64,000 nt of DNA from Guillardia theta CCMP2712 (GCF_000315625.1 NW_005434644.1:378973-442972); one strand, 5' to 3'. Positions 11,530 to 58,419 are shown, numbered from the stretch's first letter. A program made the numbers and translations. Notes: generated by a model from the sequence alone, not told the origin.

Positions 11530-11629
11530 NNNNNNNNNNNNNNNNNNNNNNNNNNNNNNNNNNNNNNNNNNNNNNNNNNNNNNNNNNNNNNNNNNNNNNN
11601 NNNNNNNNNNNNNNNNNNNNNNNNNNNNN
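11530..11629. other. Assembly gap (100 N)
   Basis: N run flanked by (CCCT)n low-complexity sequence. Confidence 0.98.
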
Positions 11630-52559: not shown

Positions 52560-55186
52560 TTTCGTCCTCTGCTCTTCTCCTCATAGGTCATCTCATCAGC
52601 TTGTAACATGTCCTCGATATTGTCCGCGTTCCTGTCCCAATCTTTTCGCATCTGTGACCACAGTGAACTCTTCTCCTTCCCCGTCCTCCTCCGCCGATCG
52701 ACTTCCACTCCTCCTCCTCCTCCTTCTCCTCCTCCTCCTCCTCCTCCTCCTCCTCCTCCTCCTCCTCCTCCTCCTCCTCCTCCTCCTCCTCCTCCTCCTC
52801 CTCCTCCTCCTCCTCCTCCTCCTCCTCCTCCTCCTCCTCCTCCTCCTCCTCCTCCTCCTCTCTTGGCCNNNNNNNNNNNNNNNNNNNNNNNNNNNNNNNN
52901 NNNNNNNNNNNNNNNNNNNNNNNNNNNNNNNNNNNNNNNNNNNNNNNNNNNNNNNNNNNNNNNNNNNNGGGGGGGGGACGTGACCGTCTCCTTCTCCTTA
53001 GCATGCATTGTCTCTCTCTTGATCCTCCTCAGCTCCTCCATCTGCATCCTCTCAGTGTCTGCCGGTTCCTCTTCTCCTTCCTCCTCTTCTCCTCCCTCCC
53101 CTTCTCCTCCCTCCTCTTCTCCTCCCTCCCCTTCTCCTCCCTCCTCTTCTCCTCCCTCCTCTTCTCCTCCCTCCTCTTCTCCTCCCTCCTCTTCTCCTCC
53201 CTCCTCTTCTCCTCCCTCCTCTTCTCCTCCCCCACCTTTGTCTTCAGCTTCCTTGCTTCCACTTGCTGCCCTGCACCTGAGGCCTGTGAAGAATTTTGCG
53301 GCAGTGAGGCAGCGAAAGGAGGTGGAGGGGATGCACATTCATCCATGCACACATGAGGGTGCACCATCAGCAACCACTCGCAACCCATGGACAGGGAAGT
53401 CGAGAACAAGTCTGCTCCTCAACCTCTCTCCCTCCCTCCCTCCCTCCCTCACTCCCTCACTCACTCACTCCTCTCTCCCTTCCCCTCTGCGCTCACCTTC
53501 CTGGCTCCTCCCGTCCGAGGCAGCCATGGCCTGGCTGCTGCTACCTTTTGGACCTGCCTCTGCTTGGTCAGCTTCTGCCTTGCGCACAAGGTTGGCCCAC
53601 AGGAGCAGGGATCTGATCGCCGCCTCGTGCAAGAGGAGCAAGAGAAGAGGAAGGAGGTGGAGGAGGAGCTGCGGAATGAGGGTCAACCCCTCCGCTCCGC
53701 TCCCCCTCAACCCTCCGCCACCTGCGCGCGAGAAATCTTTTGCATCCTGCCTGAAGACCAGGCTCCGCAGGCTCCGACCAGCAGCCTCTCTCTTCCTAAT
53801 ACGATGGAGCAGTTGCTCGTTCGACTGTAAGGCCATACAGTTTCAGCTCTTCACTCCCTCCCTCCTCGCCCTCACTCCTCCCTCTGCCCGATTCCTTTCG
53901 TAATCCTCCAAACACCCGCCCTCTTCGTTCCCCTCTACTTCCCCATCTCTTCCTTTCTCCCCTTCTCCTCTAACCCACCCACGCACCCACCCAACCCACC
54001 CAACCCACCCACCACCACCACCACCACCACCTGCTCCCATTCCTTTCCCTCCCTTCCCCTCCTCTTTTGCTTTTCACCTTCTCATTGGAGCTCCAGAAGC
54101 TAAGGCCCATCCGATCCTCGTCGATGCGATAACGGGAGCTAACTGAAGGAGCAGAGCTAGAGGGGAGAGGAGGAGCAGGCTCGTACGAGGGGAGTGCGGA
54201 AGAGTTGCTTCTCAAGGAGCCCCGACGAGGAGGAGGAGCGAGAGAAGAGTTGACAGAAGCTGCTGCTGCTGCATCCAGTCAAGACGCTATACTAGCGAAG
54301 AGAACTGGAGGCCAGCTGGCCAACAAGTCTTACCTTGAGCATGCTCGACCCGTTTGTGGGCGTTAAGTGGGAGATGAGAAGGATGTGAGGAGGTATGGAA
54401 AGAGGAAGAAGAAGAAGAAGAAGAAGAAGAAGAAGAAGAAGAAGAGGGTTTCTCCCTTCCCGGCTCTTTTTCATGAGTGAGGAAGTAGAAAGCTGTTTGC
54501 CTCAGGCCCTTGTCTTGTGGGATGTCACTCCGCGTCCTCCTCCGGGTAGAATAGTCTTGTGCCTGAACGAAATGCCTCCTGCCCTCCGCTCGTCCATGAG
54601 CTGCGTCCTCAAACATCCGAAAGGCAACCGATCCTGCGAACAAGGGTGCCTCAGGGCAGAAGGAGCAGAAGGGAGCAGGAGGAGCAGGAGCAGGAGCAGG
54701 AGCAAGAGCAGGAGCAGGAAGAGGACAGCGGAGGGGGAATGGGGGGGGGGGGGGGGTGGCTCGGATTTCAAGTCTACACACTGCCCTTTATCATCGAGAT
54801 GTCTTATGACGTGAGGCGGAAGCAGGTCTCCTCTCTTCTGTAATGCATGCGATGTGTATCTTGTGCACATCTTTCTGAGTTCTCTTTCTTCACACATAAG
54901 AATGTATAACCCAACTACACCATCTACAAGCATGTGAGTCACGAGAGCTATGGCTATGAGACACTAACTTGTATCGCACGGGCAGACTTTGGGAAACTTA
55001 ACTCACATGTGCACGCGGTTTTCTGATTGCAAGTGGCGTGTACGATACTGTGGTATCTACCCGAATGATTCCACNNNNNNNNNNNNNNNNNNNNNNNNNN
55101 NNNNNNNNNNNNNNNNNNNNNNNNNNNNNNNNNNNNNNNNNNNNNNNNNNNNNNNNNNNNNNNNNNNNNNNNNNCGACGAAGGGAC

Positions 55187-55228
<42 letters not shown>

Positions 55229-55520
55229 GGGGGGGGGGAGGAGCAGGAGGAAAACGTTTCTTACTCAGTTTGTGGTCGCTGGGGATTTCAGTCACATGGG
55301 GAGGGAAGCGCTTGCTGCTCTGCTGCAGCACTGAGGTCTCTCCGTTGGGACGTTGGAAAGGTTGCAGGTACACGGCAGTGAAGAGCACAGCGACCAGAGC
55401 GATGGAGGATGCGTGAAGGAGGTCACGGAGGTTCCAACGTGTGAGGAGGAGCAGGGGAGCTGCTGCACATGTCCTGGAGGATGACGACCGACGATCATCG
55501 GACAGTGACGAGCGCAGCAT
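52560..55520 (-). CDS. Unknown low-complexity/coiled-coil protein(s) with an N-terminal TM anchor, interrupted by two gaps
   Basis: SIALVAVLFTAVYL segment, Glu-rich EEEGG repeats and Leu/Gln/Glu-rich exons. The gene structure cannot be resolved. Confidence 0.35.
52869..52968. other. Assembly gap (100 N) next to a (CCT)n microsatellite at 52708-52862
   Basis: N run. Confidence 0.98.
55075..55174. other. Assembly gap (100 N)
   Basis: N run. Confidence 0.98.
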
Positions 55521-55824
55521 TGTCGTTGGAACGACGAGGATTCCGACAACTCACTCACTCCTCCTGCTTCCCCAACTCCTCGCCATCAGCGTCTTGTAGC
55601 CATGCTCTCTCTCCTCCTCCTCCTCTCCCTGTCTCTCCTCCCCTCTCCACTCCCCTGCCTAGTCCTTCCATCCCGAAATTCGCCATGTCACAAGGGTCAC
55701 TGCGAGTGTCGGGCCATCCCTCAAACGGGCCTGCCGGACTCACTGCCGGACTCACTGCCGGACTCACTGCCGGGCCCCGGGTCCGGTTACATCGCCAGTG
55801 GATGCAACAACCGTTGCATCGCGC

Positions 55825-56967
55825 ATGGCACCGCCTCTCGCATTGACCCTCGCGGTCGCCATGGGCGTGATGGGAGGAGGAGGAGCCTCGGCCTCGCCAG
55901 CTGCAGCTGCAGAGCAGAAGCTCTGCTTCGCTGCTCCCGTGCCTGACAACCTACAGCTCGGCTCCAGACGCGCAGCAGCGGGTCAGGAGCGGATCAGGGT
56001 GGAAGCGGACTACGTCACTTGCACGCAGTGACCGCACGGATACATCGGGAAGAAGCACATCCAGAAGGCTCTGCTGCTCTTCCACGAGAGGCACCCGACC
56101 GCGGCCATTGAGATCAACGTCACCCGACATCCTTACTCTTTCCTGGGCGATGCTAAGGACGGCAGTGGATTCCTCCGATCCGGAGGGCAGTGGACCTGGC
56201 ATGATGGCCTCGTCGACTACACTGGAGGGTCAGAAGCACAAGCTCGAGCATACGAGGCATCTCTGAGTGGTCTGATCTAGTCTCTGTGCTTGTCTGCCAC
56301 CTGACGTTTGGATGGACAGAGCTCGGGCAACGGGCAGGCATCAGGTTCCGTTATGATCAGAAGACGAACTGGCAGCCTGTAGACAGTCAGAGGATTTGGT
56401 TGTGGTCGGCAAAGCAGGGAAAGGCTGAGGAATACATCGATCGCCTCAACCACCGACACTTCGAGCTCGGAGAATCTGCGTCGGACAGGAAAACAGTGTT
56501 GGCCGCCTGTGCCGACGTCGGAATCGACAAGGAGGAAGCAAAGGCGTTCTTGGAGACAGATGAGCTGGTAGAGACCGTGTGGAAGTCATACGGAGACACC
56601 ATCCACAAGTATGGAATCCACTCCATCCCCCTCTTCGTCTTCAACGTCCCTGCCATCGGTGCCGTGGGCGGTCCATTCAGAAAGGATAGCTGCTCCAGGT
56701 ACTCGGGATGCGGGCAACGGGAGGAGGAGAGGGGGGAGGAAGGAAGGACAGATGGGAAAGGGAGGGAGGAATGCGCGTGACTTTGAGACAGGGAAGATGA
56801 AAGGACGAGGTGTCAGAGGGAACCGTGGGTTGTCAACGGTGAGCAGATCCGATCAATGAAAAGAAGCTTGTGTAGTGAAGGCGAATCGACCAGGTTCGAT
56901 GGATGCCAACAGGTTCCTCCAGATCTTCGAAGAGATCCTCCGTCTGCAGATGAAGTCCAGGGAGTAA
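55825..56967 (+). CDS. DsbA/FrnE-family thioredoxin-fold selenoprotein (TGA at 56029-56031 read as Sec)
   Basis: The frame continues through the TGA as DYVTCTQ-U-PHGYIGKKHIQKAL...VTRHPY...ELGQRAGIRFRYD...YGIHSIPLFVFN...VNGSMDANRFLQIFEE, all aligning with FrnE features. Introns at ~56270-56318, 56699-56817 and 56838-56893. SECIS in the 3' UTR. Confidence 0.88.
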
Positions 56968-57072
56968 CTGTGCTGTCAAGTTGTGATATCCTCTGAATGA
57001 CAGGAAACGTGTAAAGGCCTGGCACCTCGCTTGGTCCATGTTTCCTTGACAAGCTGGAGAACTTGGCACGGT
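56968..57072 (+). promoter_or_regulatory. Eukaryotic type II SECIS element
   Basis: ATGA (56997-57000), C, AGGAAACGTG, T-AAA, GGCC...GGTC, CATGTTTCCT, TGAC. This gives the GA quartet, a 10-bp helix II, an unpaired AAA and a ministem. Lower helix GTCAAGTT/AACTTGGC. Confidence 0.92.
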
Positions 57073-57164
57073 AGTTGATCGACCTGGATGATAAGAGGCA
57101 CACGTGAGTAATATACTCAAAAGGATGTAGGCGTGCTCAGCCTTGTTCTGTGCTGTAGTGGCCG

Positions 57165-57955
57165 CTCAGAGTGTCAGTCGCTGAGCCTGATGCCGGGCCC
57201 GGACGCGTAGGTCCAGGCTTCTCGGATCGTCACGGGTCAACTGAGTCAGTGACTTGCAGCGACTTGTCAGTGACCCGCCAGGCTGGACTTCAATACGGTC
57301 CGCTCAGGCGGCCGGGCCCCGGCACGGTCGGAGCCCGGCCCCTGCCACGGTCCGAGTCAGGATCAGTGAGCCGCCGCCGTCGCGGCCTCTCGGATGGAGT
57401 CACAGTCTCGGACTCGGTCCGACGGTCACTGAGCGGTCGCGGCGAGCCGCCTCAACAGCGACTCCGGCGAGGAATGTGTTGTGCCGCCGCAACCCCGCGG
57501 GCCGCGCAGCTACTGTCAGGTGCCGTACCCCCGTCCCGGCGCACGCCGGGGACGGTCGGACCCCAGGCTCGCCACCGTGGCGTACCGTACGATACGGCCC
57601 CGCCGGTGACCGTGCCGGCGAGTCAGACGCCGTGCCGCTAGTGGCCGGGCACCGTCCGCGGTGATGATCCGACCCGAGTCCAGTGCGGCACTGCCATTCA
57701 GGCTGTACATCCGCCGGATACCGTACGCCCGGCGTAACCCGGTCACCGGGTAGTTGGACGGTCCGAACTCGGAAACAGGCTGCCACTAGTAAGGCCCGGC
57801 CTGGGCCCGCCTGGCTTCCGAGGAGGCTCGGAACTTCCGGAAGTTCGGCACGCGGCTCCGACGGCACCGGCCCGGCCACCCGGCGATGACCGGTAGTGTC
57901 GCTGTACCGGTACCCCGTGCCACGGTGGGAGCGGCTCAATCTGTTAAGTCACTCA
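57165..57955. other. GC-rich palindromic-word island
   Basis: Same vocabulary as the other islands (GAACTTCCGGAAGTTC palindrome, GTACCGTAC, ACTGAGTCAGT). Confidence 0.7.
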
Positions 57956-58419
57956 GCCTCCACGACCCCACCCCAGCCTGTGACTTATTATTGAAAAATC
58001 ATGGTGGGTAGTCACTGCCACCTGTTTTGCCCCCTACACCACCATCCCCAGGGTCTCAGGATCAGCCCAGCATCAAACGGCATACCCAGTACCCTCGCCC
58101 TCAGGAACGCGACCACCACCCTTGCTTCCTCGAGGACCCCTTCTTTGGCCGAGTATCGTTATGCCTTCCACCCCCCATCACATTTGCTCCCTACCTTGTA
58201 TTGCACTGTCCTTGCCACCCCCTCCCCCCACCCCCCCTTACTACTTACGGACCGTGCCCTACCCCTGGTTTAATGCCACCGGGCCGTACCCCACTCACAG
58301 AACAATGGTTCATGCAGATTTTAAAAGGGATGGGAGTGGTAGCGCAAAAATGCTCGATGGGCGCTACAGCAAACATGGTTGAGAGATCGTCAAGATTTGA
58401 TCTTTGCTCATGAAGGATA

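Follow-up and report, generated by a model that had tools for sequence, protein, structure and literature searches.

DsbA-like and FrnE selenoproteins, in which selenocysteine (Sec, U) occupies the first position of a U-x-x-C motif, were described for Sargasso Sea bacteria within COG2761 (PMC1088965). DsbA-like selenoproteins were also reported for Ciona, amphioxus and other marine invertebrates (PMC2874816, PMC3473315, PMC3965025), and the literature motif U-x-x-C used for comparison throughout this work is taken from Table 3 of PMC1088965 and from PMC2874816. In algae, a “FrnE” selenoprotein was reported in Mamiellophyceae (PMC6627142) and “DsbA” was counted among the most widespread algal selenoproteins (PMC7539508). 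The latter survey credits the cryptophyte Guillardia theta with 14 selenoproteins of 12 families (PMC7539508), and the gene described here may be one of these 14.

The gene lies in a stretch of 64,000 nucleotides of G. theta DNA, the whole of which is referred to as the window. It is a genuine, expressed nuclear gene of four exons that encodes a Sec-containing redox enzyme (Table 1). Residues of its active site, C-T-Q-U-P-H-G, are numbered relative to Sec at position 0, so that the upstream Cys is Cys(-3). The reading preferred here, to which a probability of roughly 0.6 is assigned, is that of a FrnE-type selenoprotein of ~314 residues with UGA at codon 69 and a type II SECIS element, in which Cys(-3) would resolve Sec and a system of the thioredoxin type would recycle the oxidized enzyme.

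Table 1. Coordinates of the selenoprotein gene, its SECIS element and a paralogous gene. Positions are counted from the first letter of the window unless another sequence is named.
Feature	Position	Strand	Basis or remark
Spliced mRNA extent	55822..57131	+	transcript contigs; lower bound at either end
Exon 1, coding part	55825..56269	+	leader, DNLQLGS motif, strand beta-1, active site, helix alpha-1
Active-site codons C-T-Q-U-P-H-G	56020..56040	+	Cys 56020-56022, Sec 56029-56031, Gly 56038-56040
In-frame TGA (Sec codon)	56029..56031	+	residue 69 if the start is ATG 55825
Intron 1, GT..AG, 50 nt	56270..56319	+	joint 56269/56320, transcript contigs from three runs
Exon 2, DSBA domain part with helical insert and putative cis-Pro region (HSIPLF)	56320..56698	+	frames, Pfam, transcripts
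Intron 2, GT..AG, 93 nt	56699..56791	+	transcript contigs
Exon 3, 47 nt, ..EDERTRCQREPWVVN..	56792..56838	+	transcript contigs
Intron 3, GT..AG, 55 nt	56839..56893	+	transcript contigs
Exon 4, coding part, stop TAA 56965-56967	56894..56967	+	frames and transcript contigs
Type II SECIS, 3'UTR	56991..57059	+	rule-based scan, fold, covariance model, transcript coverage
SECIS helix I, 5 bp	56991-95 with 57054-59	+	fold
SECIS ATGA	56997-57000	+	starts 30 nt past TAA 56965-56967
SECIS helix II, 11 bp	57002-57012 with 57037-57046	+	fold
SECIS unpaired AAA	57013-57015	+	fold
SECIS apical mini-stem	57016-57036	+	fold
SECIS GA	57048-57049	+	fold
Paralogous DSBA selenoprotein gene	L002:1351-2271 (G000:C67:301788-302411)		same genome, other contig

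An open reading frame (ORF) on the plus strand (55798..56031), whose first ATG is found at 55825, closes at the TGA of the active site. As noted in a preliminary description of this DNA, the same frame stays open beyond this TGA as PHGYIGKKH. It runs on as PHGYIGKKHIQKALL... up to intron 1, and the remainder of the DSBA domain is encoded downstream by pieces in other frames. RNA sequencing runs were identified that include ~70% of the sequence words found in this stretch, and contigs from such runs were aligned to the 64-kb window. Three independent studies each yielded one single spliced contig that carries the unchanged TGA and covers the SECIS element, with 0 mismatches to the window in every case: run X1 (1112 nt, spanning 55822-57131), run X3 (1093 nt, 55829-57119) and run X8 (1059 nt, 55831-57087). 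As the introns are removed, these contigs derive from RNA, and as all three retain the TGA with 0 mismatches, the TGA is exonic and does not represent an assembly error. The cDNA comparison that had been suggested for this codon therefore places it inside exon 1. Addition of the exon coordinates gives a coding length of 945 nt, corresponding to 314 residues and the stop codon. An exon 3 of 56819-56838 was rejected because the transcripts give 56792-56838.

The contigs begin between 55822 and 55831, at most 3 nt ahead of ATG 55825, and a contig end is not equivalent to a transcript end; consequently, translation might start at 55825 or at the ATGs at 55861 or 55870. The predicted leader of the window protein consists of a hydrophobic core (maximal Kyte-Doolittle mean of 2.36 over 11 residues) followed by G-A-S-A-S and looks like a signal peptide. 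Secretory targeting, which had been suggested on account of the hydrophobic N-terminus, is possible for the window gene, whose start codon is unsure. As a feature of the family it did not hold: leaders vary, some beginning with MRKGFL.. and some with MGNKTS.., and several proteins start directly with M-DNLL.

Several observations concern the DNA upstream of the gene. A 12-nt unit, GACTCACTGCCG, is present three times in tandem at 55737-55772, ~50 nt upstream of the first transcribed base seen; the repeat itself showed no transcript coverage. Other transcript contigs, some of them on the minus strand, map to 55600-55684 and suggest a neighboring transcribed unit that ends ~140 nt before the selenoprotein gene. 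The window also contains three assembly gaps of exactly 100 N each (11530-11629, 52869-52968 and 55075-55174), the last of which is located 650 nt upstream.

Were the TGA a true stop, the locus would yield a short product of 68 residues, be a pseudogene or reflect an assembly error, with the downstream similarity as a relic. Such a reading is in line with the behavior of gene callers, which stop or start at the TGA, and with a scan of 55500-57600 against Rfam at E<=10, in which no SECIS family was matched. An Rfam lncRNA match in the same region was dismissed as chance. Against it stands a SECIS element that the mRNA carries in its 3'UTR, ~770 nt beyond the UGA. The preliminary description had placed a SECIS core about 30 nt beyond the true stop, and the ATGA is indeed found there, within a type II layout that is covered by the transcript contigs; the interval given in that description, which ends at 57072, includes the element.

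The SECIS assignments rest on a rule-based scan and on a covariance model, R1, built in this analysis. The rule-based scan detected SECIS elements in 14 of 67 usable 3'UTRs, compared with 1.4% in shuffled sequences and none on the reverse strand. That elements turned up in no more than about a quarter of the homolog 3'UTRs counts against the selenoprotein reading, many of these 3'UTRs being short or truncated. Eleven rule-based elements, that of the window included, served as the seed of R1. When applied to the 64 kb window, R1 returned the element of the gene as the sole strong match (37 bits, E 1e-7). A weak match on the minus strand at 58089-58174 (11.7 bits, E 0.56) is probably due to chance. 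Among the homologs, R1 identified further elements that were not part of the seed, six of them at E<0.01 and all on the plus strand and downstream of the ORF, and no SECIS was found by R1 on the minus strand of the homolog loci. Across 17 elements, changes on both sides were present at 9 of 10 pairs of helix II, and pairing amounted to 85% compared with 37-51% when the partners were slid, a figure that is partly circular because a pairing rule had been used to select the seeds. The specificity for strand and position and the matches outside of the seed are free of this circularity.

The true-stop reading is also opposed by the presence of the Sec machinery. A search that covered the G. theta assembly (87.1 Mb, 669 contigs) identified a tRNA-Sec gene (72.9 bits, anticodon TCA) together with SepSecS (423 bits) and SelD (290 bits). 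The tRNA-Sec gene (L086:1500-1664; G000:C65) is situated 6 nt from a gene for tRNA-Ala(AGC) on the same strand.

Further evidence on the TGA comes from the homologs. For exon 2, every one of the 81 database homologs has its first residue directly behind the TGA position, and such a start is what ORF callers yield for a selenoprotein. A transcript homolog from Eutreptiella, 57% identical, reads VEADFVTCVQ-TGA-PHGYIGKKH. A set of 82 loci was assembled from 80 metagenome or metatranscriptome loci and two Eutreptiella contigs. The motif D-x-V-T-C-[TS]-Q-TGA-P-H-G-[YF]-x-G-K is present in 76 of these 82 loci, in 66 distinct nucleotide versions, and the six loci that lack it are genomic pieces that have an intron at this site or are cut. 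All 66 versions have TGA as codon 0 (66 of 66). Equally without variation stand D(-7), T(-4), C(-3), P(+1), H(+2), G(+3), G(+6) and K(+7), Cys(-3) being the sole invariant Cys of the family. Among the neighboring codons, those for Pro, His, Gly and Cys differ synonymously between versions while the TGA stays fixed; the Cys codon, for example, is TGC in 59 and TGT in 7 versions, and Pro is encoded by four different codons. Named sources comprise the euglenid Eutreptiella, the haptophytes Haptolina and Prymnesium, and the dinoflagellates Pyrodinium and another one.

A TGA that is retained in all 66 versions across cryptophytes, haptophytes, dinoflagellates and euglenids, between two strongly conserved flanks, and in the transcripts of three studies makes a true stop extremely improbable, and the transcripts and the 66 versions refute this reading for practical purposes. 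The preliminary description had postulated a hidden DsbA/FrnE selenoprotein and a subfamily with altered redox chemistry. The selenoprotein stands by the exonic TGA, the SECIS element, a match to PF01323 (see below) and the TGA-containing motif of the 76 loci, and the subfamily, a conserved one, by the fixation of TGA and Cys(-3) in the distinct versions; the altered redox chemistry is an inference. Likewise, the proposed search of algal transcripts for the TGA codon and CxxU-PxG recovered both in the Eutreptiella cDNA and in 76/82 loci.

One apparent exception, the protein P0212, was considered as a full-length Cys-containing form and rejected, as it is really a Sec form in which the TGA is split T/GA by a 63-nt GT..AG intron. 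In the corresponding metagenomic locus (L097:445-684), this intron is in frame and open. ORF callers therefore translate across it, and the result is a spurious full-length “non-Sec” protein. In the genomic homologs L007-L009, an intron is found directly ahead of G-Y-I-G-K, which indicates that the positions of active-site introns differ among lineages.

Exon 2 was assigned to the DSBA family by Pfam (PF01323, 38.2 bits, cut-off 25.6), and a comparison of the family profile with solved structures matched only FrnE (5CNW) and SCO1869 (3GL5). A fold model was obtained for the Eutreptiella homolog, starting with the residue after Sec and thus without strand beta-1 (pLDDT 81.5). In a Foldseek search, this model returned FrnE and SCO1869 first (E 2e-5), followed at lower ranks by YjbH, GST kappa, HCCA isomerase and classical DsbA. 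The I-P of the sequence ..H-[AS]-I-P-[LY]-F.. is almost invariant, and its Pro is a candidate for the residue that, in solved members, forms the cis-Pro of the loop preceding strand beta-3.

The search with the family profile gave 2063 matches at E<=0.001, and a single true Cys form was present among the 150 representatives listed, the Aureoumbra lagunensis protein P0257 (MMETSP). Its site reads D-I-I-S-C-A-I-C-P-Y-A-Y-I-G-K, in which the shifted pair is kept as C-x-x-C. A word search with P0257 returned P0257 itself as the only hit, and a BLASTP comparison of the 68-residue N-terminal piece of the window protein with P0257 gave no match. A 509-residue isoform of the Cys form, P0349, exists in the same species. 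P0257 links the family to FrnE: the post-Sec piece of the window protein aligns with its first residue, Pro, on P53, and an ungapped HMMER alignment of P0257 with Deinococcus radiodurans FrnE (5CNW) pairs C49 with D19, C52 with C22 and A55 with C25. U-P is thereby aligned to C22-P23 of FrnE, the nucleophile position at the N-terminus of helix alpha-1, while the canonical position of the second Cys is occupied by Gly in 66 of 66 versions and by Ala in P0257. An AF2 model of P0257 (pTM 0.78, pLDDT ~90 near the site) contains a strand at 39-48, a loop formed by C49-C52 and a helix from P53. By this alignment and model, Sec caps the N-terminus of helix alpha-1, where the canonical C-P-W/H-C motif has its nucleophilic first Cys, and the invariant Cys(-3) ends strand beta-1, where FrnE has Asp. 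The assignment given in the preliminary description, i.e., Sec for the attacking Cys, Gly for the resolving Cys and a new Cys for the Asp of SDxxCPWC, agrees with the P0257/FrnE alignment and with the motif SDTM-U-PNG of a paralog.

This paralog, a second DSBA selenoprotein gene of G. theta, reads IELVSDTM-TGA-PNGYIGKRH and carries an Arg/Ser/Thr-rich N-terminal presequence that looks organellar. Its database homologs start after the Sec codon in 120 of 120 cases among the matches listed, and a search from the paralog for canonical Cys forms returned only Sec-truncated proteins among the matches listed. The motif SDTM-U-PNG is common to seven loci, and several relatives are located on gene-dense picoeukaryote contigs. 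The resulting U-P-N-G clade, which we infer to be the algal clade named in PMC6627142 and PMC7539508, retains S-D, part of the FrnE signature, at -4/-3, with Gly in place of the second Cys. The earlier statement that algal Sec forms are typically UxxC is therefore not upheld, as the other large algal clade reads U-P-N-G. Moreover, the U-P-N-G clade lacks the second Cys, too, so that the window gene is not exceptional in having lost the resolving Cys, and consequently only the relocated Cys is new.

A third type of site was identified in the metatranscriptome ORFs L074:3-1964 and L064:1-2796, each of which contains two DSBA domains with two in-frame TGAs. In the first of these domains, the site is IISDPN-TGA-YWAWP, with Ala at the position of the second Cys, and the second domain belongs to the family of the window gene. 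In L064, a thioredoxin domain (WCGPC; PF00085, 85 bits) is inserted between the two DSBA domains, upstream of the window-family domain; the thioredoxin fusion is known from two related metatranscriptome contigs only. The G. theta genome also contains a third PF01323 gene (L001:1423-2079; G000:C43) with a site of the S-P-Y-S type (..FDVVSPYSAF..) and without TGA, which looks like a relative of kappa-class GST/HCCA isomerase.

In the mechanism favored here, the selenolate would attack a disulfide of the substrate or another oxidized sulfur or selenium species. Cys(-3) would then resolve the intermediate, so that a selenenylsulfide would form within the molecule and bridge the four-residue beta1-alpha1 loop, and the oxidized center would be recycled by a thioredoxin-type reductant. 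The C-x-x-U pair would thus lie one motif length closer to the N-terminus. The role of Cys(-3) as the resolving residue is suggested by its status as the sole invariant Cys, by the C-x-x-C of the Cys form and by the thioredoxin fusion, and on these sequence features C(-3) and U probably constitute the redox pair.

Alternatively, Sec might act alone as the single selenol of the enzyme, comparable to the Ser of kappa-class GST/HCCA isomerase or the Cys of monothiol glutaredoxins. The selenenylsulfide would then be resolved by glutathione or by the substrate, and Cys(-3) would have a different function, for example to tune the selenol, to bind a metal or to support the structure. Such a mechanism is viable on this scaffold because the U-P-N-G sister clade, which includes the Guillardia paralog, works with Asp at -3 and without a nearby Cys and is equally conserved. 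The existence of SDPN-U-YWA as a third domain type, the occurrence of GST kappa and HCCA isomerase among the structural neighbors and the crystallization of FrnE with GSH, as stated in the title of the structure entry, point in the same direction. It is opposed by the invariance of Cys(-3) in 66 versions and by the retention of both Cys(-3) and Cys(0) as C-x-x-C in the one Cys form among 150 listed. In addition, the structural similarity to GST kappa (E 0.06-0.2) is weak next to that to FrnE (E 2e-5). We regard catalysis by Sec alone as rather unlikely, yet as a serious rival.

A further possibility is a Sec peroxidase or a reductase of sulfenic or selenenic acids, in which a peroxide would oxidize Sec to Se-OH, Cys(-3) would resolve it and thioredoxin would recycle the enzyme, i.e., a peroxiredoxin-like cycle on a DsbA scaffold. 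The conserved residues Thr(-4), Gln(-1) and His(+2) around Sec, the thioredoxin domain fused in one relative and the description of FrnE as an oxidative-stress protein (PMC6627142) are compatible with this chemistry. Its motif, however, is unlike those of GPx or Prx, and a peroxidase function appears improbable. To our knowledge, no member of the DsbA/FrnE family is a peroxidase, which likewise counts against it.

Returning to the pair of Cys(-3) and Sec, a more far-reaching proposal is that the family represents a distinct thioredoxin-fold site, in which the redox pair would have moved from C1-x-x-C2 of helix alpha-1 to the beta1-alpha1 loop and the N-cap, and which would be characterized by a loop-closing C(-3)-x-x-U, recycling by thioredoxin, a nearly obligate use of Sec and a dedicated substrate in marine protists. 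Members of the family occur in cryptophytes, haptophytes, dinoflagellates, euglenids and pelagophytes. We put this proposal forward tentatively and rate its chances at somewhat below even.

The DsbA/FrnE family, the recoding mechanism and the use of Sec by this organism are known already, and the gene does not open a new field. What is gained is the correction of a missed gene in a reference algal genome, in a clade whose database proteins are truncated at the Sec codon. Marine protists thereby exhibit at least three types of “DsbA” active site, SDTM-U-PNG, VTC[TS]Q-U-PHG and SDPN-U-YWA, all of which are devoid of the classical resolving Cys and one of which gained a Cys at the Asp position. 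The window gene offers a clean natural case for the role of the resolving residue in a Sec enzyme and for the question of why reversion to Cys is so rare. In the searchable literature, no description was found of the C-x-x-U-P-H-G arrangement or of the loss of the second Cys in algal clades, and sequences of the family may well be contained as “DsbA” in an algal selenoprotein database.

With the UxxC-type DsbA/FrnE selenoproteins, the window family shares the PF01323 fold and the location of Sec at the exposed, nucleophilic first Cys position. Routine mis-annotation, in which the exon with the Sec codon is taken for 5'UTR, is common to both, as is, for the eukaryotic representatives, a SECIS element in the 3'UTR that is often of type II. 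In contrast to them, the window family has Gly in place of the second Cys, its invariant Cys at -3 stands where FrnE has Asp, and its Cys forms are nearly absent (one among 150 listed). The widespread algal U-P-N-G clade has the same fold and the core U-P-x-G-[YF]-I-G-K, has lost the second Cys, is Sec-only among the matches listed and occurs in the same organisms. It differs by S-D at -4/-3, by Asn instead of His at +2 and by its Arg/Ser/Thr-rich presequence. FrnE (5CNW) and SCO1869 (3GL5), the best profile and structural matches, share the context D-I-x-S-x-x-x-C-P-x-x-Y-I-G-K, but are bacterial and have Cys for Sec within C-P-W-C. D. radiodurans FrnE possesses a C-terminal tail with a CxxxxC motif, which is absent from the window protein.

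Among more distant systems, kappa-class GST/HCCA isomerase resembles the window family in its DsbA-like architecture and in having one catalytic residue, placed first in the motif, and differs by its catalytic Ser and glutathione-dependent chemistry, the structural match being a weak one only. The CxxU proteins of the Rdx type (SelW, SelT, SelH, SelM and Sep15) likewise have a thioredoxin-like fold with C-x-x-U between beta-1 and alpha-1, for which a selenenylsulfide is presumed. In the Rdx proteins, U is situated at the second, helix-internal position of the CxxC motif, whereas in the window family, according to the P0257/FrnE alignment and the AF2 model, U occupies the first, N-capping position and the Cys lies in the preceding loop, on a scaffold that additionally carries the DsbA helical insert.
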